Below are positions 1 to 62,748 of a stretch of DNA of 64,000 nt, in pieces (positions within the stretch are counted from its first letter, which is position 1; every line of letters starts with the position of its first letter). Source of the DNA: Macrostomum lignano (Eukaryota). The notes below the pieces were generated by a model. That model saw nothing but the letters and a program-made list of their open reading frames with translations. It was not told the origin of the DNA and did no database searches. The position numbers and the translations under genes are program-made. The DNA lies in assembly GCA_002269645.1 (NCBI GenBank), contig NIVC01000739.1:1-64000 (forward strand), given 5' to 3'.

Positions 1-779
1 TTGTCCTATCGTGAATTAAATGCAATAAAATATTTTGGAAACCGATTTCAGTTTGTCAGTCTGTTTTTACGGACAAACTGAAGCTCAGACATATGTAGAA
101 GGCCGTAACGCTTCACCACACAAATGATCGTGCAAATTTCTTGGCCGGCTTTCGCTACAAACGCATTAGCGTGATGAAAGCTTATAATATTTACAGCAGC
201 TAAATTCACAGCTTTTCACTTTCTGGACTTCCCATTCCAAACGAATTGATACATGTGTAAGTGTCCGATAGCGTTTTTCTCACAAGTAATTTTTTTTAAA
301 TTTTGAGAATTTTTACAACTTTTGACTGAATTTTTTTTAGTTAAGATTGCTGAAATTGAATGGATCCTTTCCGAATTCAATAGACGGTTGAACTAGCTAA
401 GTACGAACGTATAGAATTATGAAGAAGCATTTTTGTCAGCTTGCAAAAATATATTGTACTAGTAGAATCCCGAGTTCGTTAAAATTTAACAGAAAATTTT
501 AGCTAGTGGAGAGCAGCAATAACGCTTAAAATACGGCTGAACTTACTAAACATGTTCCGCAAAGATGCCCTCAGAAATGCTGAATGTCGACACACGCCAG
601 GCTGAATTTAGTCTGCCATGCATGCAGAAGCAGCGATTGCATGTTGAAGCAAGTTAGGGGGCTGCTGCAAAGCAGGCGGAGATGATGCGGCTACAGCGGC
701 TCTGCCCTGCGCGGCTACCTTGCTCAGAAGGCTTCCCCGGCAGACGAAAGCCAGTTTGGGTGTTGTCTATGGAGAGGTT

Positions 780-1410
780 CGGTGCTGCCGACTTCCTGTG
801 GATGAACGACAGTGCGCTGAAGCTTACATGTATTTGCTTGCTCCTGAAGCCTCGCTCCTAGAGGAAGGAAGGCGGTGAACTTATACGGACGTCCAACTTA
901 TGGGGACGGCCACCGCTACTTCGGCACTTCGGAGTTTTTGGCCTCGACGATGACCTCCTCGCCTTCCTGTCAACAATTAACTGTTATTAAGGCGCCCAGC
1001 GCCAGATCAATAGGCTGGTCTTGTGGTCAACACACTTAATACCGAGGTTCTCACCGTGTCGGCTGATTTCCCAGAGGACCTGTACGGTATACATGTATGC
1101 CTCAGCGCAGAAGACCATGCGCTCGCCCGCTGCCAGCGGTTCACCTACCTTGGCGGTCTGGTGCTCCACATAGAGGAGGACATCTGGCGGCGCATAGGAC
1201 TCGCCTGGGCGGCCTACTGATCAACCCACCGTCCTTCTCAGTCCCAACCTCTACAGGACGTCCCGCTATTCACCTTGCAGGGTATATTTAAATGGGGCCA
1301 AGCGGGATTCAGTCTATGTGTGGACAGCCTGCTTTGAGATGCCGGGACGCCCGACACCACTGGCGGGGCGGACTTCGTCGCACCGAGGCACGGCCATCTG
1401 ACGTATCCTG
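780..1410 (+). mobile_element. Degenerate RTE-like non-LTR retrotransposon fragment (RT C-terminus), same family as 19193-20110
   Basis: 1023-1220 reads VNTLNTEVL...LARCQRFTYLGGLV...RRIGLAWAAY, aligning with VNTQKTVVL...LPRCQQFVYLGGLV...RRRGLAWAAF of the 19-20 kb copy. ~1325-1385 (gacagcctgctttgagatgccgggacgcccgacaccactggcggggcggacttcg) matches that copy's DCLLADAGAPDTAGGAAF end. Stops, frameshifts and an internal deletion are present. Confidence 0.8.
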
Positions 1411-2949
1411 ACCGCGTGACCTTACTGGGCTGCATCTTTTGTTGTTCTATTGGCATTATGGTTTAACAAAAACAATAATAGACATGTGCATATACACATA
1501 CATTAGATATCCCTATCATCTACATGTATGCGAGAAGTTGCATGTTATCTGCGCAGGGTATTGCATGCACGTACATGTTCTACTGTGAAAAAGGACAAAG
1601 TAAACGAAGTATATTTGGGGGGTCGCCGTCATACTCGTAAGCTAGAAAAATCACATCGCCGAAACAGGGCTCCACAAAAGCTCGAAAAGTCACAAGCTTG
1701 AAAAGTTACATCGTCTAAAACTGATTTACCAACCACCACCCACAAGCTCAAAGTCACTGTAGTGCTCTTGTGTGGGCGTAGAAGTTGGGCTCTCATGGCC
1801 GTATATTTAAGCATTTACATATACTAGTTTGAGCACATGCGAGCTAGTGAGCACAACGTGCCACTGTTGCGTACCAGTGCAAGGGCGTACATGTACACGC
1901 GATGCCGAGGCACGTGGGGAAGGCTAAAGCGAGGAGCAAAGGAGAGACGCGACATAACAGTGCACTACAGTTGTAGAGTGTTCTACTTCCCACAAAAAAT
2001 CATAAAAATTGTTAGCATACTACTTACATACATACTACTTTCGGTCGAAGAAGTGAATTGCGCAAGCAAACATTGAGAACAATGGGATCCATGAGAAATC
2101 TTAGGAAGAGAATAATAGCATGAGAAAGGCTGCGCAAGAGGAGGTTAATGAGTCATCGGGGTGAGGGAGGGGTCAGGAGCCTTGCGTCACCATTTGGGAT
2201 CCTTAAAGGAGATTGAGGTGACGATGAGCACAAGCGATACTCTAAGTAGGCACGGGACAAGGAGGACACAGCGCAAGTAAACCGTGCTAAAACGTGATAA
2301 AAAGATGGGAAGCACGAGAAATACATGATAAATGGGTGGGGTGCATGAGAAATGGGAAAGCAGGCGAGGTACGCAAAAAAAGGGGGCTTCGGAAAGGCAA
2401 GTGTGGCCGAGTGGGAGACGGAACAGAGACAGCAGGAGGTCGCGACAGAGCGTGAGTCAGGTGTCCTGGTCAGGGACTCGGCCCAGTCTCTACAGCTCTG
2501 CCCAGTAGGGATCTGGGATAGTTCGAAAAATTTCCCTACATGATTCCGCGACCAAAACGTGGTTACATCATAATAATATTAATAATAAAAAATAATAATA
2601 TCACGCCCCGCACCGACCACAGAAGTGGCCAAAAAGGAGGGGCGTCAAATCGTGCGCTTTAGGACAAGATCTCTCTACATGTAGTAATGTACGCTCGTAA
2701 TTCCGCTATTATAGACAACAAAATTTGGTAGCAGTGTCAGGGACTAATCAATAACTAGAGCTGAGAAATTGCAAAAGTTGGAGGCCAATCTATAAATGAC
2801 TCAGTTCTCAAAAAGCATTACTTGGATATGTTTTTTACCACATACACAGACTAGCATTATTAATGTTTTAGTAGTTTAAGAAATCGCAGTGAAATTTAAT
2901 ACAAAATGAAATACGTATAAGTTCTTTCCGTTTCTTTACTTCTTTGGTC

Positions 2950-3622
2950 CAAACCGCTTGGCTGAGAACTCGTTTCTTGGCCGAGGCGTAGCCGAGACAG
3001 CCGCGCCGAGTGGTTTATGCGGACGCCAATGGGACGGCACACCCTGGCTGACACTGTCAAGACTTTAGTGAACGATGTTTCGCCTGGTAATGGTACACGC
3101 TACACTAATCAAAGTCTACGCAAGACCTGCGCTACCACCCTGAACGAGGCTGGCGTGCAACGAGCTGACATAGCACGTGTGACCGGGCACAGTAGCAACG
3201 CTTTAGAGCGCTACATTGGCATCTCAATGAGTCAAGAGAAAACTTTCAGCGCCATCCTAGCTGGATCTGCAGCTGCTGAAACGAAACCGGAAAGTGCAGC
3301 AAAAACCGAGCCGGCCGGGGCTGGAGACGAGATGGACGGTGGCGTTGGCAGTGGTCAACCAAGGGTGAAGAGAATGCGCCTGGAGGTGTGTGGCGATACA
3401 AACAAAGAGAGCATCTATTTCGAATGATTGAATGATTGAAGTGACAAAATACAGCATCGTAAAAAAATTTCTTTCTTTAATATTGCATTGTTAATGTTGT
3501 TTTATTACTTCACTTTCTGATAATAAATATACTGTTGTTGAGTTGATTTCTCTGGCCCGGACCGCTGTTTCTTTGGCCGGGCCAAAGAAAGAATTGTTGC
3601 ATTGAACCATAGATATATATGG
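2950..3622 (+). mobile_element. Crypton-like (DUF3504-type) tyrosine recombinase C-terminal fragment plus putative 3' terminus
   Basis: EWFMRTPMGRHTL...RYTNQSLRKTCATTL...IARVTGHSSNALERY matches the Crypton YR pattern WY..P.G..TL / YTNHSLR.T / TGH.S...+..Y, with the H of HxxR replaced by Q. No N-terminal half is visible. Boundaries are approximate. Confidence 0.7.
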
Positions 3623-6600
3623 AGCATCCACAATGATGAGTAGGTACTTGCCCTCTATCGGACCGGCAAAATCAATGTGCACTCGCTCCCAGGGGTTGTC
3701 AGGTTCTGGCCACGAGTGCCGAAAGTTCTTATTTCTGGACTTGTACGCGTTGCACACGTTGCATCGTCCAATGTAGTCAGCGATGTCACGGTCCATCTGT
3801 TGCCACCAGAACAGTTTCCTCAAAATCGACTTTGACTTTTCTACCCAAGGTGCGTTGAGTGTACAGCTGCCAGGGCAGTTTCTCTCAGGACACGAGGCAA
3901 TACAATTCTATTCATTCTGTAAATAATTCCATCATTGACAGTTAGCTCATCTTGAACCTTTGAGTAGCTGAGTAGGTGTGGGTCGTCAAATAGATTATTG
4001 TTAATTATGGCTGCGCCCAGGCATCTGAACTCCGGGTCCTCTCTGGTTGCGTGTGCAATGCGATCCAGCTGAATTACTCCCGGGTTGTCAGCTTCGAGGA
4101 GTCCGATCGATGCTGTCTGTGCATTCGGCTTAGCGGGCACCAGTCGAGATAGCGCATCCGACAGCATTAGCTTTGATGGTCGATACTGTATGTCATAGTC
4201 ATAAGCAGCTAGTATAATTACCCATCGTTGTAGTCGAGCTGAAACTCTGGTGGGCAGCTGTTTGTCTGGCGCGAATATGTATGTGAGGGGCCGGTGATCA
4301 GTTATCAGTGTGAACCTCCGGCATACAAGAACCGATGGCATCTTTGAATGCACCAAACCAGTGCCAGGCCTTCACGCTCTATTTGCGAATATTTTGTTTC
4401 GGCGTCAGACAGAGTCTTGCTCATGTACAGCACGACTTGACCGCTTTGTGTCAACACTCCGCCCAGAGCTCGCTGAGAACTGTCGCATTCCAGTTCAATG
4501 GGATTCTCCGGATCAAATATTTGAAGACTCGATTGATCAGAGTGACCTTGATTTCGTCAAATGCTATTTGACACTCCTTTGTCCACACGAAGTCCTCATT
4601 TTTCTTTCTTAGTCGATTGAGAGGCTTGGTCAGTGCAGCTAGGTTTCTGATGAACTTGCCGCTAAAATTTACGAGACCCAGGAAGGATTTAAGCTCGCCA
4701 ACGTTCTGCGGTGGTGTCATGTCCTGGATTGCCTTCACTTTGGCTGGGTCCGGCTTGAGCTGATCTCCTTCCAATAAGTAGCCTAGAAACTTGATCGAAG
4801 TCTTGCGGAATTCACTTTTTGCCGTGTTGATATTCAATCCTTGCTGGTTTAGTCGATGCAATACTTCCGTCTCACGAACTGCCAATTGTTCTACGCCTTT
4901 GCCGCATATCAATATGTCGTCTACGTAGGCAATGACGCCAGGAATTCCTTGTAGGACTTGGCTAATGTACCGCTGGAAGATCGCAGGTGCTGTTTTCACT
5001 CCGAACGGAAGCTTGTTGAAAGCGAACATCCCAAATGGTGTTGAAATTACTGTCAGCTCTTTGGAAGCTTCATCTAGTGGGATCTGGTGATAAGCTTTCT
5101 CTAGGTCCAGACGAGTGTATATCCGGCTGCCAGCAGCAGTTGCAATCACTTCGTCAGGTGCAGGCATCGGATATGAATCGTTGATAAGATGAGAATTGAT
5201 TGTCACCTTGTAGTCGACGCAAAGTCTGAGCTTTCCAGAAGGTTTCTTGACCACGACAATTGGTGAGGCCCATTCACTGAACTTGACGGGCTTGATGGTG
5301 TCTTCTTCAAGCAACCGATCGATTTCATCCTTGACTCCCTGTCTGAGTGCGAAGGGTAGCGGCCTGGGTTTGCAATGAATTGGAGTGGTTCCTTCCTTGA
5401 TCTTAAGAGTTACTGGTGGAAATTCGCATGACTGGGTTGCCGATGTGCAGCTGTTGTCTACAGCGTTTAGCGTGAAATTGAGCTTGTCTTGGCCAACCAG
5501 AACAAAGTTCCTCTGCGATTCCACAATGAAGAATGTGATTGGAATGAACTCGTCATTGTACTCCAACTCAGTGTCGTGTGTTCCAAAGACCTTCATCTGC
5601 GTATCAGCGTATGTTGTCAGAACAGTGTCTGTAGGTGTCAGCTTTGGACAACCCAATCGTTTCCAGATCGTTTTTGACATTACCGAAACTCCTGCCCCAG
5701 TATCGATTTGTGCGTTCACGCTAAGCATCGACCCGCTCGTGTGTCTGAGCCTAACAGGCACGGTGTAGCTATCAACGGGATGTCGAATGTGAAAACAATC
5801 CTCCTGTTCAGCTTCGCTTGCATCTACAAAGCTTGTGGTCCTTGGCCACACTGCAGCTCGCCTAAATTGACCAGATGCTGACGGGCTTTTGAACGATTTT
5901 CGGCCTTTGCCAAAACCAGTTGATTTCGTTTTGCAAACTGTTGCGAAGTGGTTTTGCATGCCACATTTGTTGCACGTTTTTCCTTTCGCAGGACACCCTC
6001 CATTGGAGCCATGCATTGTGCCACATCTGCCACACTTGGAGCTTGTAGAGTGGGAGCCTCTGGCCACCGATGCTGAAATTTTCATTACTTCAGAAGACTG
6101 CGGCTGACTGGTGCAACCCTTTAGTATTTGCGTTTGTGATAGGTTCTGGTGCGCCTCAGCGATGTTGATAGCTGTCTCAAACGTGAGAGTGCTGAAGTCC
6201 TGTTCCAATAACTTGCTGATGGCCACCTTGTCATTCAAACCGAATACGAGCTGATCTCTCAGTCTCTCATCTCTGGATAGGCCAAACTGACGCTTGTCTG
6301 CCTGCATGCAGAGTTGCTGTGCATACTCACGAATGCTCATTGATGCCGTGCGAGTGATATGCTGGAAATTGAATCTCTCAGCCATGACGAACGTCTTTGG
6401 TTCCAGGATGCTGGCCAGTAGTTTGGTCAGTTCATCGAAGCTCTTTTCTCCCGGCTTCTTGGGAGCGGCTCGATCTGCCAATGCGTCGTACAGCTTGGTG
6501 CTGAGCTTCATCAGCAGCAGCTTGTTTTTCGTGTCGTCCTGCCAGCCGTTGAGTTCGCTGCACAGTGTGAATCGGTCCAACCACCTCTGGAAGTTCGAAC

Positions 6601-6801
6601 TTTCATCGAGTTTTTCGATGTCAACTTGCTGTCCTCTCGATACTTGTGCGCTTGGGTTCTGCGCTGTCGCTGTTGCCGACTTTGTCGCTTGGACTGATTT
6701 CGACGAGATAGCAAGCGGTGGTGCTTTGTCGCTCGAAACCGTTTTACCAACTCCTTTAGTTGGCGATGCTGGCGTACTTCCAGGCAATTTCGTAGCCTAT
6801 G

Positions 6802-6814
6802 CTTGCCGACGCCA
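6802..6814 (-). promoter_or_regulatory. Primer-binding site of the Gypsy element
   Basis: Minus strand TGGCGTCGGCAAG begins 1 nt after the LTR end (...CAACA g TGGCG), complementary to a tRNA ...CGCCA 3' end. The tRNA identity is not established. Confidence 0.6.
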
Positions 6815-6815
6815 C

Positions 6816-6973
6816 TGTTGTGCTTTTGGCTTTAGCCTTTAGCAATTGTCAGTCTAGCGGTCTGTTGACCTCTGACGCGTCTATCATTTATTTCATAACT
6901 CAATAGCATGGTTCAATTCATCAACGCAGTCGCGTAACAAAAATGTCTATGGCTAAGCCATCAACCCACAACA
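6816..6973 (-). repeat. Putative 5' LTR (158 bp) of the Gypsy element
   Basis: Bounded by the inverted termini tgttgtg (6816) and cacaaca (6967-6973). Contains AATAAA on the minus strand. Directly followed on the minus strand by a PBS-like TGGCG. Confidence 0.65.
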
Positions 6974-7510
6974 ATCAGTTCATCAATTTTTACGAGCTAC
7001 TCAAGATGCCAAGTGCTGATCGCCAATCAACTCTGTAGCACATGCCACAATACTGCAATTCTTTTCAGTTGCTCTGTGACAACCAATGAAAACGTCCTTT
7101 TAACACAGACATTATTATAGTTGTTGCTCTTCAGGCTGCCATAAATGCCATAAAGCGAAAGAGATGGAAAGCAGTCGGAGAGTACCCAGCTATGCAGGCA
7201 GTTTGTCTATTGCAGTGGTTTCTTTCGGTAGCGCAATGTTCTTTGAATTTGTTTTGATTCATTTACCTGGCTCATAAATTGAGTCTTATTCAGCTTTTAG
7301 AGCCCGTGACAATAGTGAATCTAACCCTGACAAGTTCCTCTTTATCGTTGGCGTCTCAAGGCTAGGTAGCATTGAGCAGTCGAGGCGCTGTAAGAGAAAA
7401 GGTTACCATAAAGAATGCCTAAAGCATTCAGACCTTCTTCGACCACGTTTTCGGGGCTCTGTTTATTGGAGGTTAGGAAACACGAGCTTCCAGCCTCAGT
7501 CATGCGGGTC

Positions 7511-7516
7511 TATAAA
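7511..7516 (+). promoter_or_regulatory. TATA box of the prepro-peptide gene
   Basis: TATAAA about 100 bp upstream of the ATG at 7617. Confidence 0.55.
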
Positions 7517-7616
7517 TTCAAGCCCCCTTGAGCTCCCAACAGCTCAAGACCCAAGTCGAGAATCGGCTCTGCAAATCGAATCTCTCTGAGCTCAAAATTC
7601 AACAACAGCAGCAGTC

Positions 7617-7874
7617 ATGAAGTGGCAGTTCGCCCTCGGTCTCCTCCTCTGCGTGGCGCTGGCGGTCTACGCCAACCCGGCTGAGCGCGAAGACAACGAC
7701 GACCTGGACGAGGGGCCCAACGACGACCTGGCCGACATGGACCAACCGGAGCTGGATGATTCCAACGAAGACGCCCATCCGGAATTGAAGTGGTTTAGCA
7801 GGTGGTTCCGGATTACGTATCGCAGGCGTGGGGGCGAGCGCCGCTACCTTCGTTCCTACTTCCGCTTGGGCTGA
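7617..7874 (+). CDS. Secreted prepro-peptide (signal + acidic propiece + cationic Arg/aromatic C-terminal peptide ending in Gly); candidate antimicrobial peptide or neuropeptide precursor
   Basis: Residues 1-19 form a hydrophobic signal (MKWQFALGLLLCVALAVYA). Residues 20-57 contain 17 D/E out of 38. Residues 58-85 (KWFSRWFRITYRRRGGERRYLRSYFRLG) have net charge about +9. True ATG, upstream TATA, GC-rich codon usage, single exon. Confidence 0.85.
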   Translation: MKWQFALGLLLCVALAVYANPAEREDNDDLDEGPNDDLADMDQPELDDSNEDAHPELKWFSRWFRITYRRRGGERRYLRSYFRLG

Positions 7875-8190
7875 ACAACCCGAGCGTCTTCTGACTGATC
7901 GCATTGGAAATTGATAGCTAAATCAGCTGAACACTGCTTTACTTGTAAAAATTGCAGACCAAAGTGACTGCTCAACATCGCGGACATTCACAAATATACT
8001 ACTAGGCTTATTCTTATATTATATTATTATAAACCAAATCTTCGATTTTAATTGTTGGAATGGATTCATTAAATTGTTGGTGCTTTTACGTTTTCAAGGA
8101 TTTGTAATGGAAATTCATCGAAAAGCCAGCTGGGATACCGAATGCCAGAATAACAAGCAGCGATCGAGAAGTTGAATCAGTCATATGTGA

Positions 8191-8351
8191 GGTAGATTCT
8201 GTAATGGGTGAGATACGCTCGTATAGATAGATTCGGTTATGGGTGAGATAGATTCGGTAATGGGTGAGATACGCTAGTATATATAGATAGATTCGGTAAT
8301 GGGTGAGATAGATTCGGTAATGGGTGAGATAGACTCGGTAATGAGTGAGAT
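8191..8351. repeat. Short tandem array, 21-bp unit gatagattcggtaatgggtga
   Basis: About 6 imperfect copies visible. Confidence 0.85.
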
Positions 8352-8704: not shown

Positions 8705-9452
8705 ATGTCAGAGTGACCATATGAATCAGAAAATTGGCATGTCAAATAGTGACCCAGTGTGTCAGAAAATGATTTTGCATGTCAAAGTGACCCAGTGTGT
8801 CAGTCAGGAGGCACGTTAGAGAGTGACACAATGAGTCAGAGAGTGATTTGGCATGTCAAAAAGTGATACAGTGTGTCATAAAATGATTTGGAACGTCAAA
8901 GAGTGACCCAGTGTGCCAGGGAGTGATTTTTCACGTCAAAGAGGGACCCTGTGTGTCAGGGAGTGATTTAGCACGTCAGAGAGTGACCCTGTGTGTCAGG
9001 GAGTGATTTTGCACGTCAGAGAGTGACCCAGTGTGCCAGGGAGTGATTTTGCACGTCAGAGAGTGACACAATGAGTCAGGGAGTAATTTTGCATGTCAGA
9101 GAGTGACACAATGAGTCAGGGAGTAATTTTGCATGTCAGAGAGTGACACAATGAGTCAGAAAGTGATTTGGCACGTCAGAAAGTGATCTGGTGTGTCAGG
9201 GAGTGATTTTGCATGTTAGAGAGTGACACAATGAGTCAGAAAGTGATTTGGCACGTCAGAGAGTGATCTGGTGTGTCAGGGAGTGATTTTGCATGTTAGA
9301 GAGTGACACAATGAGTCAGAAAGTGATTTGGCAAGTCAGAGAGTGACCCGGTGTTTCAAGGAGTGATTTAGCACGTCAGAGAGTGACAGAATGAGTCAGA
9401 GAGTGATTTGGCACGTCAGAGAGTGACCCGGTGTGTCAGGGAGTGATTTGGC
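8705..9452. repeat. Minisatellite, ~40-bp unit (two ~20-bp subunits), e.g. gagagtgacacaatgagtcagggagtgattttgcacgtca
   Basis: 40-bp periodicity is directly visible. Confidence 0.9.
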
Positions 9453-9989
9453 ATAAAATTATTATGTAAAGAGCAGAGATTTGTCAAGCTTCAGTTACAT
9501 AAAATGGGTTTCTATGAGACGTCGTTTAAAGGGATGACAAAAAACAAAAGTATAATATTTATCCTGCACGTGATCAACCCATATCTCAGCAAAAATATAT
9601 AGTAGCATTGAACACTAACACAAGAGTAGTAGAAGCAAGCTACACTTAATTTTCTTAGAAATGAAATGAAGCCGAAAATGAATGCACACTGGTACATTTG
9701 TCGTATCGCTAGTACATTTAGGGGCCTCTCTCCGAAAACGGACCGTTGAGTTTGCACCGAGCATCATTCGGCCCTGCGGTCTAACGTGCTGAAGCAGAAG
9801 ACCGCTCGTGAGCGTCTCTACCAGCTGTAGGGCAGCATCTGTCGCGTCATCACACAGGTGCATACCCATCAACCCCACTTCGAGGGGCTGAACGCTATCC
9901 TAAATTCGCCTCCGCTTCATAAGTTTATTAGGGCCAATGCTATGATATCGGTGATAAAACGTTAAATGACACACTTTCTGGCTTTTATG

Positions 9990-10680
9990 CCAATGAAAAC
10001 TCTAATCCCGCATATGGATTTCGTCCTTCGCGACCTTACCAACATCCACATCGACCCGTACATTGTGAATAGTCGCCTCCCCGCTCTCAACATCAGGAGG
10101 GACTTCCAGACCGCACCTCAGACAGCAGCACCTCACTGGATGTCGGTGCGTCACTGACGGCTCATTGTTTAACGGCCGCGCTGGAGCGGGTATCGCCATC
10201 TTCCACCATCGAGGGTAAGATGCTCTTCCAGGAAAGTCTGCACCTCAGTGAGAACATCCCGGTTTTCCCAGCCGAAACATGAGTCATTGAGCAGTGTGCC
10301 CAGCACCTACTCTAGCTAGGCGAACATCAAGAAATTCAATATTTATTTGTTACACTGATAGCCAAATTTCCACTGCTACAGTATCTCAATACCACCGCAG
10401 TGTGCAGTCTCTCTCAGTCCTTAACAGGATTATAATCATATGGACAACCAGTCACAGCAATATCCAGCTGCGTAACGTGCTGTGGATTCATCTCTCCTAA
10501 GGAGAGTAGCAACCCAGACAGAAACCACCGTATGATGAGGCTACCCATACGTAGGACGCAAATCTCCCACAATACCACATCAGGTGGCTGCACCAGCAAC
10601 ACCAGCTGCATCGGAACAGTTGCACCGACTACAGGCAGGTGTGCATGGTCCTAAAATGGTTATGGATTCTTCCAGACATA
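9990..10680 (+). mobile_element. Degenerate non-LTR retrotransposon relic with RNase H
   Basis: Across frameshifts: [19 protein letters not shown] (10147-), LHLSENIPVFPAET*VIEQCAQHL, ICYTDSQ, NRIIIIWTTSHSNI. These are the ordered RNase HI motifs DGS / E / D / W..H found in RNase H-bearing LINEs. Confidence 0.7.
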
Positions 10681-11761: not shown

Positions 11762-12766
11762 TCACTGTCCGATGCCCCTCCAAAAAGCCGGGATCGTCAC
11801 GAGACAGACGATCACCAGAAAGGGTTGAATGATCCAACCGATACTCAATAGCCAATCCAGTAAGAAAATAAATATAAGTCCTATAGCTGCTGCACAAGCC
11901 AGGACAAAGATGAAGATAAGCCAACAAAGTTCTGATTTAAAAATATCTAGAATCCTCTCTCGAACGTTTTCCAGCTTCAGAGCGACAAAAACTGCAAATG
12001 GCACGGACAGCACCGCCATAAGCAAAAACCTCACAGCCGCGTAGAAATGGTCACTCAGTCGGCCAAAATCATTATTCGTCACTTCAAACGTCACCAGGTA
12101 CCTTGGAGTGGCCTGCTCGTGTCGGTAAACAACGCATGTGCCGAAGCCGGCAAGGCTGTTGTTTGCTAGCACCGAGTCGCAGCCCTCGTCTTGAATCTTC
12201 GAGAGGTTGAGCCCCGGATCGGGCTGGTCGCAGAGTTTCTCTTTGCCCAGGAGGACTTCGCCCAGCAGAAGTGTCTGGTCGCCACTCTGAGTGCTGTAGC
12301 TGGGTCGCTTGCTGTTGTTCTCAGTTAAGAAGTAAATTCCCCAACCGTAGGGACCTTCAGTTGCGGTGAAACCAGCTTCATTGAAGACTTTCTCTCTGTC
12401 ATTCAGGCTGGCATCGTGAATGAGCAACCGTGGCTCCGAGTCGACAAGCAGGAGTTCGCGAGCGGCGTGAAATCGGGCATCGAGCACTGGCTGCTCGATT
12501 CGCTCGATGCTTTTGATCAAAATGGATTTCAGTGGATTTAGAGGCCTCGCGTACAAGTACAGAGTGACCAGTTCGCTGACGGTTGCGTACTCTGTGGCGG
12601 TCTCCGGCTCGTCTTTTAATAGCGGCTTTCGATTGACGGCACTAAAATAAGGCTTTGAAGTCCGTGCTGTACATGTCGAACTTGTTGAACATGTTGAACG
12701 TGTTGTATCCGTTGTTTTCACCGACTTCGCCGTCAGAGATTTCCGCCATTTTTTGAGCTGTTTCAT
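11762..12766 (-). CDS. PARP/ART catalytic-domain-like protein with ~3 C-terminal transmembrane helices
   Basis: IKSIERIEQPVLDARF, EPRLLIHD, GPYGWGIYF, LLLGEVLLG, DSV and TCVVYRHEQATPRYLVTF follow the ARTD catalytic fold, with H and Y kept and the catalytic E replaced by T. Three hydrophobic stretches end the protein. First in-frame ATG is at 12766; the track start at 12808 is TTG. Confidence 0.8.
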   Translation of the reverse strand: MKQLKKWRKSLTAKSVKTTDTTRSTCSTSSTCTARTSKPYFSAVNRKPLLKDEPETATEYATVSELVTLYLYARPLNPLKSILIKSIERIEQPVLDARFHAARELLLVDSEPRLLIHDASLNDREKVFNEAGFTATEGPYGWGIYFLTENNSKRPSYSTQSGDQTLLLGEVLLGKEKLCDQPDPGLNLSKIQDEGCDSVLANNSLAGFGTCVVYRHEQATPRYLVTFEVTNNDFGRLSDHFYAAVRFLLMAVLSVPFAVFVALKLENVRERILDIFKSELCWLIFIFVLACAAAIGLIFIFLLDWLLSIGWIIQPFLVIVCLVTIPAFWRGIGQ

Positions 12767-13356
12767 TCTTGTAGGCTTAAAAAGTTTTCTGAAATTTGTG
12801 TCTTTCAAAGGCTTGCTGGTCTTTTTAGTGCATTAATGCGCTTTCTGAGGTGTAGCTCAGGTGTTGAGGTTGCTCGTTTCTTTGCGATGCGACTACTCAT
12901 ATTTTATAGAGTGATAGAGAGTACTCAGCTACAGTATCTGTCTTGCCGTTGCACAAATTTACTTTGCTGACCATTGGGCTGTGTGTCCAAACAGCTAAAT
13001 GTACAATATGAAAAATGGGCCGAAAATAAGAGCTGCGCTCGTGTGAAGTTAACTATATTTAGCAACATAGAAAATTGGTGAAGGTATCACGGTATCAAAA
13101 TATAGGGTCCACACGAATTTTCCAACGCTAATTGTCTTACTAGCTATGGCTAATCCAAAAAGTCTTAAAAATCCAGCAACCTTAGTCAAGAAGTGCAGTT
13201 TCAAGCACCGACCTACGGCGCTGTTCATTTGTTTCTTCGCATAAGAAGCTGATCCAGATTATGCCAAGTTTCAGATTTAGTGGGCAAGTTGTTTCCTGGT
13301 TTTGCTGGTTGACGCTATAGTTGCTAATTAACTACTAACTAGCTGGAATCCTTTTT

Positions 13357-13688: not shown

Positions 13689-13877
13689 GGTGCACACAGG
13701 GTGCACACACCAGGGTGCACATACCAGGGTGCACACACCAGGGTGCACACACCAGGGTGCACACACCAGGGTGCACACACCAGGGTGCACACACCAGGGT
13801 GCACACACCAGGGTGCACACACCAGGGTGCACACACCAGGGTGCACACACCAGGGTGCACACACCAGGGTGCACACA
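13689..13877. repeat. Minisatellite, 14-bp unit gggtgcacacacca
   Basis: About 13 near-perfect copies abutting the SINE 3' part. Confidence 0.95.
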
Positions 13878-15360
13878 ACCTCCTGCTCAAATCCCCAAAA
13901 TGTTTCATGAACTAAGAAAACAAAAGTCTGTGGCGACCAGAGACAGACTCCAATTCAGCATTTGTTGCGCGTATTGCTACATTTGATGGCCCACGGGAGC
14001 TGAAATCAAATAAACTTATTTGTACTGCTTTTCCTTACTCGCGAGTCGCTTTAAACCATTTTTTCGGTAACAATCAAAAAAACGAAACGTTCCAGCGTTC
14101 AAATGATTCAAGATTAAAACTAGTTTTAAAAGGTTCTCAAGACCTATTTTTTAAATAAAAATGTTTTATAATAAACATTATTATTATTATTGGTGCTGAT
14201 TTTTTATAGTATTTGAGACGACCTAATGAACGAAATAAAACAAAAAAACTAGAAAATAATTTTTTGACATTAATGCAGTTATAAAACCGCTATAGCATTA
14301 CTTATTACGTTAAACTTCGAAAACACCTCCCTTTTTTCAAGTAAAAAATGGTTAAAACTTGTCTTAAAAAAGCTATCACTATTCACAAGAAATAAAAGTC
14401 CCATCCCAGTGGTCCTTTAGAAAACAATGTTAACACCCTAGAAACAGTTGTCTCGGGGCAGACGGTTGCATTTTCGTCGCTTGCATTAGCTTTATCCAGC
14501 GGCAATGATAAACTGTGCACAGCTCCGTTATTTTGCTCCCAGATTGGCCGAAACTGACCAATTGCCTCAATGGCTAATCCTCTCTCCTTTGTCGGCGTCG
14601 TAGGATTCCCGCGGGTTTTCTTGTAAGTAAGAAAACTGCATTCGATTTATGACCGTCATCTCAGTGGTGGAAGCCAATTCAGCACTGATGTAGGGCCCAA
14701 AGACGCGATCGATGCCAAGCTCTACTCTTCATCATTGCAGTTCTACGACGACGTTTAGTGCGACGGGCACTTTGCTAAATCGGCCTGTGCGAGTGTTGAC
14801 GCGGCTCCGCAGAAGTTAAAGATTTCCGAAAAAGAAGCCGCCGACAAAGTCTCGCGCTTGGAGGAGCAATTAATAGTGGGGCATAAAATTTGTCTGGACG
14901 CGTTGCCAAATCAGATGCAGACTGGGAGACTGGGAGGCAGAGAGCAATCTTGTTCTAGACCATTTTGGCAAGTTTTCACTTCGGCCGTCTTGGACCCGCT
15001 GGAAGAAATGAAAGAGAAGAAAAGAAAAAAAATTAAGCGTCATAAAAACCGGCGGTTGACCAGTCGACGCGAGGGCGGGAAAGCGGGTTCGCAGGCCAAA
15101 TTTGGGCCGGCCGAAAGTCGTAAAACGCTGTTGCTAACAAGGGGTGGGCGGGGGTACTAAGATCCGGAGAAAGGAGTGGAGTGGAAGATTTTGTGTGAGC
15201 GAAGCCGGGCGGTGCAATGAGGATCCTCTCTCAATCTTCGAGTATAAATTGCGGCCCCACAGCAGTGCAGGATCTTTCGCCTCAACTGAAATTTGCTCGT
15301 CAGTCAACTTGTTTTCTTTCAACAACCGTCTCATACGATTAGCAAAGAGGTCTTTTGAGC

Positions 15361-61830: not shown

Positions 61831-62748
61831 CTACTGACGACTGAAGCCAAGTAGTATGAGAAAGATGTAGACAACATCCACGTAGATCTGCATAGCTCCG
61901 TAGACGTACTCCTCCTCGGATAGATCGTGCCTACGACCGCCGACAACGCGCTGGGTGTCGAAGATGAGGAACAGTACGAACAGCAGCGCCAGCAGGCCGC
62001 CATAGACGCAGTCAAGAATCTTGGCGGTCATTGAGAAATTCGGATCGCCCCTGTACACAAAGAAGGTGACCAAGCAGGACAGTCCGAACAGGAACACCAC
62101 CAGGCTAAAACCGAACAGCAAGCCGCTGCACATGGTGAAGTCGTAGCGAGTCTGCACAGCGAACAGGGTGACGCCAAGGCACACGGCGGCGGTGACGCCA
62201 AGGCACACGGCCACCGTGTTAGTCTGATAGCACGAAGCAATAACTCCAGTCATGAAGGACAAGCTAGCCGTGAAGATGGCCAAAGAAATAAAATTGCCAG
62301 GAAATTTACGACGCAGCGGTGTAATGCAGACCAGAGCAAAGTACATGATAATAAAGATTCCGTAGGACACGTGGAACAGCCACAGATTGGATCTGGCAAA
62401 TTGTTTCACAGGTTTCACAGCCGAGAAAATGATCACAACAGTGAAGGTGACCAACAGTTGGGCAAACAGTATCAGATAGACTTTGCGTATGAAGCCCCGG
62501 CGGATCTCTTTATTGTCGAGGCCGCGGATAGCGAATTCGCCAACTTCATTGGTGGCGCCAGATTCCACATCGCCAGTAGATCCAGGCTGGTTACTAAAGC
62601 CTTCATTTTTTATGCCCCCTGTACCCGAGCCCTGAGCCTGAGCAGCGCCAGCCTTTTGCGGACAGTCAGTGTAAGCTTCTGCCGGATATGGAGGCGGCTG
62701 CACCTCAACTTCATTAGGATAATTTTTCAAAGGCTGATCAGCAGACAT
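61831..62748 (-). CDS. Lifeguard / TMBIM paralog A, intronless, 305 aa
   Basis: Continuous ATG-to-stop ORF. IRRGFIRKVYLILFAQLLVT, RRKFPGNFISL, QTRYDFTMCSG, FDTQRVVGGRRHDLSEEEYVYGAMQIYVDVVYIF. Confidence 0.95.
   Translation of the reverse strand: MSADQPLKNYPNEVEVQPPPYPAEAYTDCPQKAGAAQAQGSGTGGIKNEGFSNQPGSTGDVESGATNEVGEFAIRGLDNKEIRRGFIRKVYLILFAQLLVTFTVVIIFSAVKPVKQFARSNLWLFHVSYGIFIIMYFALVCITPLRRKFPGNFISLAIFTASLSFMTGVIASCYQTNTVAVCLGVTAAVCLGVTLFAVQTRYDFTMCSGLLFGFSLVVFLFGLSCLVTFFVYRGDPNFSMTAKILDCVYGGLLALLFVLFLIFDTQRVVGGRRHDLSEEEYVYGAMQIYVDVVYIFLILLGFSRQ

Follow-up and report, generated by a model that had tools for sequence, protein, structure and literature searches.

The stretch of DNA examined here, hereafter the window, comprises positions 1 to 64,000 of contig NIVC01000739.1 of the Macrostomum lignano assembly GCA_002269645.1, and carries at 7617..7874 of its forward strand a small gene which, as judged by sequence comparison, is one member of a previously undescribed multigene family. 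The members have in common a predicted signal peptide and an acidic propiece, followed by C-terminal tails which differ widely from one paralog to the next. We consider it somewhat probable that the gene encodes a secreted, charge-neutralised prepropeptide with a host-defence (antimicrobial or cytolytic) role.

The gene and its predicted product

The open reading frame (ORF) extends without an intron over 85 codons, from ATG to TGA, and its translation falls into three parts (MKWQFALGLLLCVALAVYA / NPAEREDNDDLDEGPNDDLADMDQPELDDSNEDAHPEL / KWFSRWFRITYRRRGGERRYLRSYFRLG) before the stop. The features of the gene are as follows.

7617..7673, + strand: predicted signal peptide, residues 1-19 (MKWQFALGLLLCVALAVYA), from hydrophobicity, the -3/-1 rule and paralog conservation
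7674..7787, + strand: anionic propiece, residues 20-57, with 17 D/E and net charge -16; moderately conserved relative to the closest paralog
7788..7868, + strand: cationic Arg/aromatic tail, residues 58-84 (KWFSRWFRITYRRRGGERRYLRSYFRL), the putative mature peptide, with a presumed N-terminal boundary
7869..7871, + strand: codon GGC for Gly85, putative amide donor; terminal Gly kept in six paralog types
7872..7874, + strand: stop codon TGA
8068..8073, + strand: ATTAAA, candidate polyadenylation signal, 193 nt past the stop

The N-terminus displays the n/h/c layout of a signal peptide, with a mean Kyte-Doolittle hydropathy of 2.6 over residues 5-18 and a break after V-Y-A and before N that fits the -3/-1 rule; the signal peptide proposed in a preliminary description of this DNA is thus predicted again here, and it is kept across the paralogs. 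The propiece of 38 residues includes 17 Asp and Glu and a single Arg, while the tail of 28 residues holds nine Arg and one Lys, one Glu and eight Trp, Phe or Tyr (36% Arg/Lys and 29% aromatic), bears a net charge of +9, is free of cysteine and ends in Gly. The sole cysteine of the precursor lies within the signal peptide. All of the residue counts in the preliminary description, for the 38-residue propiece with its 17 acidic residues as for the composition of the 28-residue tail, were reproduced on recomputation from the sequence, and the architecture it had proposed, namely a signal, an anionic propiece and a cationic tail ending in Gly, is borne out by the ORF and by the paralogs.

The ORF is far beyond chance. 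Among the 115 ATG-initiated ORFs of at least 60 residues in the window, a hydrophobic N-terminus combined with an acidic-then-basic partition was found solely in that at 7617..7874, and its GC content of 62% (81% at third codon positions, GC3) compares with 41% in the flanks. The annotation of the GenBank assembly has a called gene at exactly the same coordinates. As the gene models of this assembly derive from a genome-guided transcriptome (StringTie/TACO, with RNA-seq, trans-splicing and poly(A) data) and not from ab initio prediction (PMC5730564), the presence of this model provides indirect evidence of a transcript. The identical protein is encoded on three contigs of the assembly; these copies are non-independent evidence, as are the near-identical assembly copies of the other family loci.

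A family with a constant prepro region and a variable tail

A profile built from two proteins, that of the window and its closest paralog, was compared with 1.84 billion representatives, and an alignment-based profile was subsequently used in a word search of a collection of 5.8 billion clusters. The M. lignano genome itself was covered through its annotated proteins and through fetched loci, such that unannotated paralogs may exist. About ten paralog types were recovered, in which the reading frame is conserved and which have a signal peptide of the form MKWQ[LF]ALGLLLC.. and an acidic propiece in common; every named member is annotated as a "hypothetical protein". The tails fall into widely different classes, being W/R-rich, (VR)n, made of repeated (L/M)PRVR units, amphipathic with Lys/Arg, or (RRYY)n, and most of them end in Gly. 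Those returned by the profile searches include KWRRRRRFRWRKAIRVAGKVAKAVL, KWFVRWRRRRWRFRFFRG, KKWRIKSACKIFRRLLHLARKCYAKKG, KKFVRVRVRLG and KKFLRVRLPRVRM. The preliminary description had suggested that paralogs that conserve the signal and the propiece and vary in the tail would support a precursor of the antimicrobial peptide (AMP) type, and this is the pattern which the profile searches revealed.

The closest paralog group, Mlig025063/008283/022283, emerged from the first search and has the same signal peptide, a propiece 60-70% identical to that of the window protein, and a different tail, KLFFRRRRRRHYFVYHSRRRYYRRR(FYRRYYRRR)YHRRHHVHIVAYHG. The number of repeats varies among its copies (96 vs 105 residues), and one frameshifted copy has 75 residues. 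The tails of the further members are as follows.

Mlig024774/026085: ..AEKWRRRRRFRWRKAIRVAGKVAKAVL
Mlig023933: ..QQKWFVRWRRRRWRFRFFRG
Mlig020420: ..PQKKWRIKSACKIFRRLLHLARKCYAKKG
Mlig004661/022076/010792/023536: ..AKKFVRVRVRLG, KKFIRARVRVRLG and KKFVRVRARIRLG
P0036: KKWLRVRARTDV...
Mlig020534: KKAVYKPNYYKD, barely cationic
P0039: ..LQKKFLRVRLPRVRMPRVRLPRVRLPRLRVRFRWSKK, on a 929-nt genomic contig from a separate sequencing run, SRR31628392

In the short-tailed members the charges of propiece and tail are roughly balanced, at -16/+9 in the window protein and -11/+12, -13/+9, -9/+11 and -8/+6 in others. The member from run SRR31628392, whose tail is made of repeated (L/M)PRVR units (VRLPRVRMPRVRLPRVRLPRLRVRF), is encoded at 541..813 of Logan contig 42504 (L008), where a TATA-like box and an element GGAAAAACGTGG accompany it; it may extend the family beyond the reference M. 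lignano assembly for the first time.

Comparison of the window gene with its closest paralog discloses a gradient of conservation. The signal codons are 96% identical at the nucleotide level, with a proportion of nonsynonymous differences (pN) of 0 and of synonymous differences (pS) of 0.14; the propiece is 72% identical (pN 0.24, pS 0.43); and the tail is barely alignable, with only a skeleton of the form K-x-F-x-R...(W/Y)F....RRR..xRRY.R...G remaining. The promoter is nearly identical, parts of the 5' untranslated region (UTR) are conserved, and the 3'UTR cannot be aligned. We considered whether the tails are related by frameshift, and this was rejected, as the other frames of 7788..7874 have no similarity to the paralog tails, the positional skeleton being held in common instead. 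The junction of propiece and tail is always (E/Q/L/K)-K-(W/F/L/Y/A) across the family, with KK in five paralog types (P0029, the P0035 group, P0036, P0039 and P0040). The terminal Gly is found in six paralog types with either GGC or GGT as its codon, TGA or TAA as the stop, and L, H, Y or R as the previous residue, and the retention of this residue while its surroundings changed is as expected of an amide donor. It is reasonable to propose from these comparisons that the tails diverge rapidly through substitutions, the expansion of repeats and frameshifts, with the export/propiece cassette and the promoter held constant.

Local duplication has evidently contributed to the family. The window gene stands alone in its own locus without clustered family members; the L001/L007 locus is a cluster of three. 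One of these, RRYY148, encodes 148 residues at L001 719..1165 (L007 266..712), 9.3 kb upstream of the closest paralog, and consists of a signal peptide and acidic propiece before a tail of 79 residues that consists almost wholly of (RRYY)n repeats and has YYG at its end, with a net charge of +43 and 37% aromatic residues. This extreme Arg/Tyr polycation may be a material-forming or coacervating protein. A broken copy lies 2 kb downstream in L001, where the 5'UTR and 22 nt of the signal exon are present at 12108..12130 and the propiece and tail EKFRIRFRFRKHRYFRRRSQF resume at ~13740 (13731..13922). The frameshifted copy of 75 residues is at L006 10001..10228, where a different frame still encodes HHVHIVAYHG, the C-terminus it originally had. 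Further local duplications are a head-to-head pair in L015 and a tandem pair in L014 (10001..12935), whose genes of 62 residues start at 10001 and 12747. These tandem genes of L014 appear to have been joined into one chimeric model, the annotated Mlig004661 protein of 85 residues (P0034), in which an acidic stretch is duplicated. A trinucleotide repeat of ~100 units is situated between family genes at L001 11227..11703, and would read as poly-Leu, poly-Ser or poly-Val depending on the frame.

The claim that the family is an unrecognised one stood up well. Pfam offered no family at E <= 10 for the window protein and no real match in eight relatives (a marginal Lock_Gag1-like match of P0034 was discarded as an artefact of the duplicated acidic stretch in the chimeric model); a Protein Data Bank (PDB) sequence search with the window tail gave no match; and no paper on the family was found in the searched literature. 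The profile search of the 1.84 billion representatives returned M. lignano proteins only, together with one low-complexity match, and the word-indexed profile search added just one sequence, with the same signal peptide, and nothing convincing beyond Macrostomum-type sequences. From these searches the family appears so far to be confined to M. lignano and one contig from SRR31628392.

The (RRYY)n tails have look-alikes, mostly bacterial proteins with Sec or Tat signals and one unrelated eukaryotic case, and these were set aside as compositional matches and not homologs because neither their signal nor their propiece corresponds to those of the family. The uncharacterised metagenomic and bacterial proteins P0003-P0013 (e.g. 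Beijerinckiaceae HEX8664143.1) join a Sec or Tat signal to a C-terminus rich in RRYY/RRYW through a spacer that is acidic or neutral, a design that recurs across kingdoms. Two adjacent genes of similar design occur in the eukaryotic contig WLWI01026680.1 of GCA_012271395.1 (L005), at 31..438 and 3001..3591, composed of a poly-acidic block, one of poly-Arg or RRYY, and a Cys-rich end with Gly as the last residue. The first of these runs off the end of the contig, and the second (P0007) has a complete signal peptide; since this signal peptide is unrelated to that of Macrostomum, the design looks convergent.

Promoter elements in common

Three elements were noted upstream of the window gene.

7443..7453, - strand: element CGAAAACGTGG (core AAACGTG), ~173 nt 5' of the ATG; A(A/C)ACGTG is present in every independent paralog promoter
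7476..7486, + strand: the element again, at one mismatch (GGAAACACGAG), placed like GGAAACACGTG in the promoters of P0035 and P0027 and like GAAAACGTG in those of P0023 and RRYY148
7511..7517, + strand: TATA box TATAAAT, ~105 nt before the ATG, within the block GCGGGTCTATAAAT, which L001, a paralog locus, has in identical form

Six independent paralog types have upstream regions that have diverged beyond alignment, yet in each of them a TATA-like box precedes the ATG by ~85-125 nt and at least one A(A/C)ACGTG core is found at -110 to -175, often as GGAAACACGTG or GAAAACGTG. Within 260 nt of 15 gene starts there are 21 occurrences of A(A/C)ACGTG, where 0.8 would be expected from the density of the motif in 271 kb. 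The ACGTG core is compatible with several basic helix-loop-helix (bHLH) and basic leucine zipper (bZIP) classes of regulator.

Structure of the tail

The preliminary description had envisaged the tail as a disulfide-free beta-hairpin, and this part of its interpretation could not be upheld. The hydrophobic moment of the window tail at beta periodicity (170 degrees) is 0.24, which is no different from the shuffle mean of 0.26, and the moment at alpha periodicity is 0.52 as compared with 0.27 in shuffles (p ~0.04), a weak signal. An AlphaFold2 model from a two-sequence alignment, of low confidence (predicted local distance difference test, pLDDT, 58.6), has a helix at residues 55-72 and disorder in the remainder. 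The rejection of the hairpin thus draws on the lack of beta periodicity and on the helix and disorder of the model, both of which are weak evidence. Among the other tails, (VR)n has a beta moment of ~1.0, several are strongly amphipathic, and others are W/R-rich or helical-amphipathic.

Comparison with known precursors

By design, the closest systems are precursors of the Hydra arminin type and of the frog dermaseptin type; as far as the sequences can be compared, the family is a member of none by homology. Like the arminins, it has a signal peptide and a bipartite precursor, anionic in one part and strongly cationic towards the C-terminus, along with many paralogs in genomic clusters and apparent restriction to one genus, so that the likeness to the arminin layout which had been claimed holds at the level of design. 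Profile searches detected no sequence homology between the two; arminins are Lys-rich, unlike the Arg/aromatic or (VR)n tails of Macrostomum, and they have been shown to be active and to be expressed in the endoderm, whereas the Macrostomum family is known from sequence. What defines the Hydra AMP families is a signal peptide together with bipartite charge, paralogs in clusters and confinement to a genus (PMC10945409), and the C-terminal peptide of arminin 1a has been used in its amidated form (PMC10945409; PMC6217004).

The likeness to the frog dermaseptin-type and conotoxin-type families lies in the conserved prepro region with a hypervariable C-terminal peptide, the common Gly and the local duplication. 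Frog preprodermaseptin and conotoxin-type precursors combine a hyper-conserved signal, in which synonymous sites too are conserved, with a moderately conserved acidic propiece and a hypervariable mature peptide at the C-terminus; Gly commonly serves as amide donor in these families, which grow by local duplication. The frog precursors differ in that their propiece ends in KR and their genes contain introns, as opposed to the KK or single K and the intronless genes of Macrostomum, and there is no homology.

With respect to the tails alone, indolicidin, tritrpticin, lactoferricin-type peptides and synthetic peptides of the (IRIK)2-NH2 type match KWFVRWRRRRWRFRFFR-amide and FVRVRVRL-amide in composition and length; the likeness to these Trp/Arg-rich and (XR)n linear AMPs is compositional only, and the amphipathicity of the window tail is weak. 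The KW start, the central GG and the C-terminal Gly recall the cecropins. Membership of that family was rejected given the absence of a Pfam cecropin match at E <= 10 and the presence of a 38-residue acidic propiece, cecropin precursors being without a long anionic N-terminal propiece. Tachyplesin and arenicin resemble the tail in their richness in Arg and aromatic residues. As the window tail has no cysteines it would form no disulfide-stapled hairpin, and the beta-hairpin AMPs (tachyplesin, arenicin and protegrin type) were rejected on this ground along with the beta moment and the low-confidence model described above. Lastly, the precursors of FVR(I/L)-amide and other amidated neuropeptides of flatworms and lophotrochozoans are alike in their signal peptide, basic cleavage sites and C-terminal Gly, and some of the paralogs would end in ...VRL-amide. 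In precursors of the FVR(I/L)-amide, FLP and NPF types it is the bioactive peptide that is conserved, frequently as several copies between basic sites; they differ from the present family, in which the mature end is not conserved, a single C-terminal peptide is present, and charge and length are extreme. Membership of the FVR(I/L)-amide group, which the FVRVRVRL-Gly paralogs had brought to mind, was rejected on architecture and on the pattern of conservation.

Proposed processing and function

In the processing we favour, the signal peptide would be removed after VYA19, and the pro-form (calculated isoelectric point, pI, ~4.5) would travel and be stored while the charge of the polycationic tail is neutralised by the polyanionic propiece. 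A cut at the junction, at KK in several paralogs and at the single Lys58 here, would then free an Arg/aromatic peptide of 26 or 27 residues (pI ~11.9), the terminal Gly of which would be converted to an amide, and the peptide would most probably serve in host defence as an effector active on membranes, antimicrobial or cytolytic. A host-defence role seems the most likely one because the cassette is conserved and its cargo hypervariable, the tails carry a putative amide-donor Gly, the paralogs are clustered and apparently restricted to one genus, and the compact genes are seemingly co-regulated. Of the overall interpretation first put forward, the architecture, the paralog pattern and the novelty of the family have stood and the beta-hairpin has not.

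A number of observations weigh against such a role. The amphipathicity of the window tail is only weakly significant (p ~0.04) and its AlphaFold2 model is poor (pLDDT 58.6). The window gene, like its three nearest relatives, has a single Lys58 and no dibasic site at the junction, for which reason the start of the mature peptide is uncertain, and a convertase might cut the 27-mer at the internal RRR and RR of the window tail. Two paralogs have long tails of the (RRYY)n type, with net charges of +20 (P0023) and +43 (RRYY148), which are atypical for AMPs and would fit a structural or coacervate role as well; P0040 is barely cationic. The gene identifiers of the family, sought as evidence of expression, had no match in the Macrostomum and M. 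lignano full texts and supplements searched, and the genus restriction may in part mirror which flatworm proteomes the databases hold.

The long tails lend some weight to a different proposal, one which we regard as unlikely on the whole: that the product is a structural or granule-packaging polyampholyte, secreted uncleaved or with its halves together, in which the Arg/aromatic and acidic blocks would drive self-coacervation or condensation in granules. Rhabdite, adhesive, shell/cement or prostate glands could be its site, and mucus, glue, eggshell or seminal material its destination, possibly with cross-linking of Tyr. RRYY148, by its charge and its aromatic content, and P0023 do resemble sticker-rich polycations and not AMPs, the dibasic junction is missing from the window gene and its three nearest relatives, repeat number varies among the closest-paralog copies, and the combination of a signal, an acidic spacer and RRYY recurs in bacteria and in one unrelated eukaryote, which hints at a generic role of a physicochemical kind. 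Most of the family tails are, however, short (11-35 residues), non-repetitive and amphipathic, and would suit soluble peptides better; five paralog types have a KK junction and the terminal Gly is retained, both of which suggest classical propeptide processing and amidation, and the window tail includes just three Tyr. A precursor of neuropeptides or peptide hormones, the alternative that the preliminary description had itself raised, strikes us as improbable. Here a convertase acting at RRR70-72 and RR75-76 would free YLRSYFRL-amide, and the KK paralogs would give peptides of the FVRVRVRL-amide type, as ligands of receptors. The dibasic and tribasic sites and the C-terminal Gly which this would need are indeed present in the window tail; the short paralogs consist of KK, 8-10 residues and Gly, ending in RL-Gly as the window gene does, and F-V-R-V-R-V-R-L and Y-L-R-S-Y-F-R-L have R3, R7 and L8 in common. 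Amidated FVR(I/L)-type peptides are in use in flatworms and other lophotrochozoans. Peptides of the GFVRIamide type are mentioned in the searched literature, without details of their precursors. Some neuron-derived peptides of Hydra are antimicrobial too (PMC10945409), which we count in favour of this alternative. The tail is, however, the least conserved part of the protein, and this disfavours a neuropeptide: conservation is reversed, with the signal and propiece conserved and the supposed bioactive end the most variable, and the octapeptide is absent from the closest paralog, which would yield HHVHIVAYH-amide or YY dipeptides instead. Moreover, the tails span 11 to 79 residues and net charges of +3 to +43, no repeated copies lie between dibasic sites, neither FVR(I/L)G nor RFG occurs in the window gene, no Pfam neuropeptide family was matched, and some ten fast-diverging, locally duplicated paralogs, found so far in M. 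lignano and one other run only, would be atypical for signalling.

That the ORF is non-functional, a chance or decaying frame beside a retroelement with a spurious transcript model, appears extremely improbable. There is a retroelement fragment ~770 nt upstream, and broken family copies do exist (the L006 frameshift and the pseudogene at L001 12108/13740). The GC3 of 81% against 41% GC in the flanks, the transcript-derived gene model, the identical protein in three assembly copies, and the conservation of promoter, signal and frame in diverged paralogs, with pN of 0 in the signal and pN below pS in the propiece, all argue to the contrary.

A broader proposal, which we hold to be doubtful, is that one cassette for export with an acidic counter-ion serves a continuum of polycationic products in Macrostomum. 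This would extend from RL-amides of 8-10 residues, through defence peptides of 18-35 residues (Trp/Arg, (VR)n or (L/M)PRVR-repeat), to coacervating or cross-linking (RRYY)n polymers of 50-80 residues. If true, signalling-like, antimicrobial and material-forming polycations would have come from one recent ancestor under one promoter logic (TATA and A(A/C)ACGTG), a natural experiment in the birth of new effector classes.

No antimicrobial or host-defence peptide family for Macrostomum was found in the searched literature, and the present one is, on the evidence of its sequences, a new sequence-orphan gene family of known precursor design. It would offer a clean case of a constant secretion/propiece cassette with a hypervariable cargo, a pattern known in Hydra, frogs and cone snails, and one that would be of independent origin here. 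As a flatworm model, M. lignano has an annotated genome and can be made transgenic (PMC5730564). This tractability makes predictions about the family, the function of which we wholly infer, cheap to test, and the family, being compact and intronless, with short promoters and one cis-element in common, would be directly accessible to reporters, RNA interference and synthetic peptides. Its study would open flatworm mucosal and gut immunity and the control of the microbiome to experiment, and would supply natural Cys-free Arg/Trp/Tyr peptides, including salt-water-adapted ones.

Surroundings of the gene

A retroelement pol fragment with a gag-type aspartyl protease, RVT_1 and RNase H occupies 3841..6842 of the window on the minus strand, and ends ~770 nt upstream of the peptide gene. 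Because the other two assembly copies, L002 and L003, have the same spacing, the insertion predates their duplication. Shortly downstream of the gene, tandem repeats are found at 8187..8351, 8734..9453 and 13693..13877; the repeat units on this side are of 21/60 nt, of 40/80 nt in ~18 copies and of 14 nt in 13 copies. Genes for proteins with a PARP catalytic domain flank the peptide gene, at 11762..12808 (- strand) of the window and at 1552..4065 and 14124..15125 of L002; PARP-domain proteins are frequently immunity-related. Towards the far end of the window, an ORF at 61831..62748 (- strand) strongly matches the Bax inhibitor-1 (TMBIM) domain (E = 6.6e-29).

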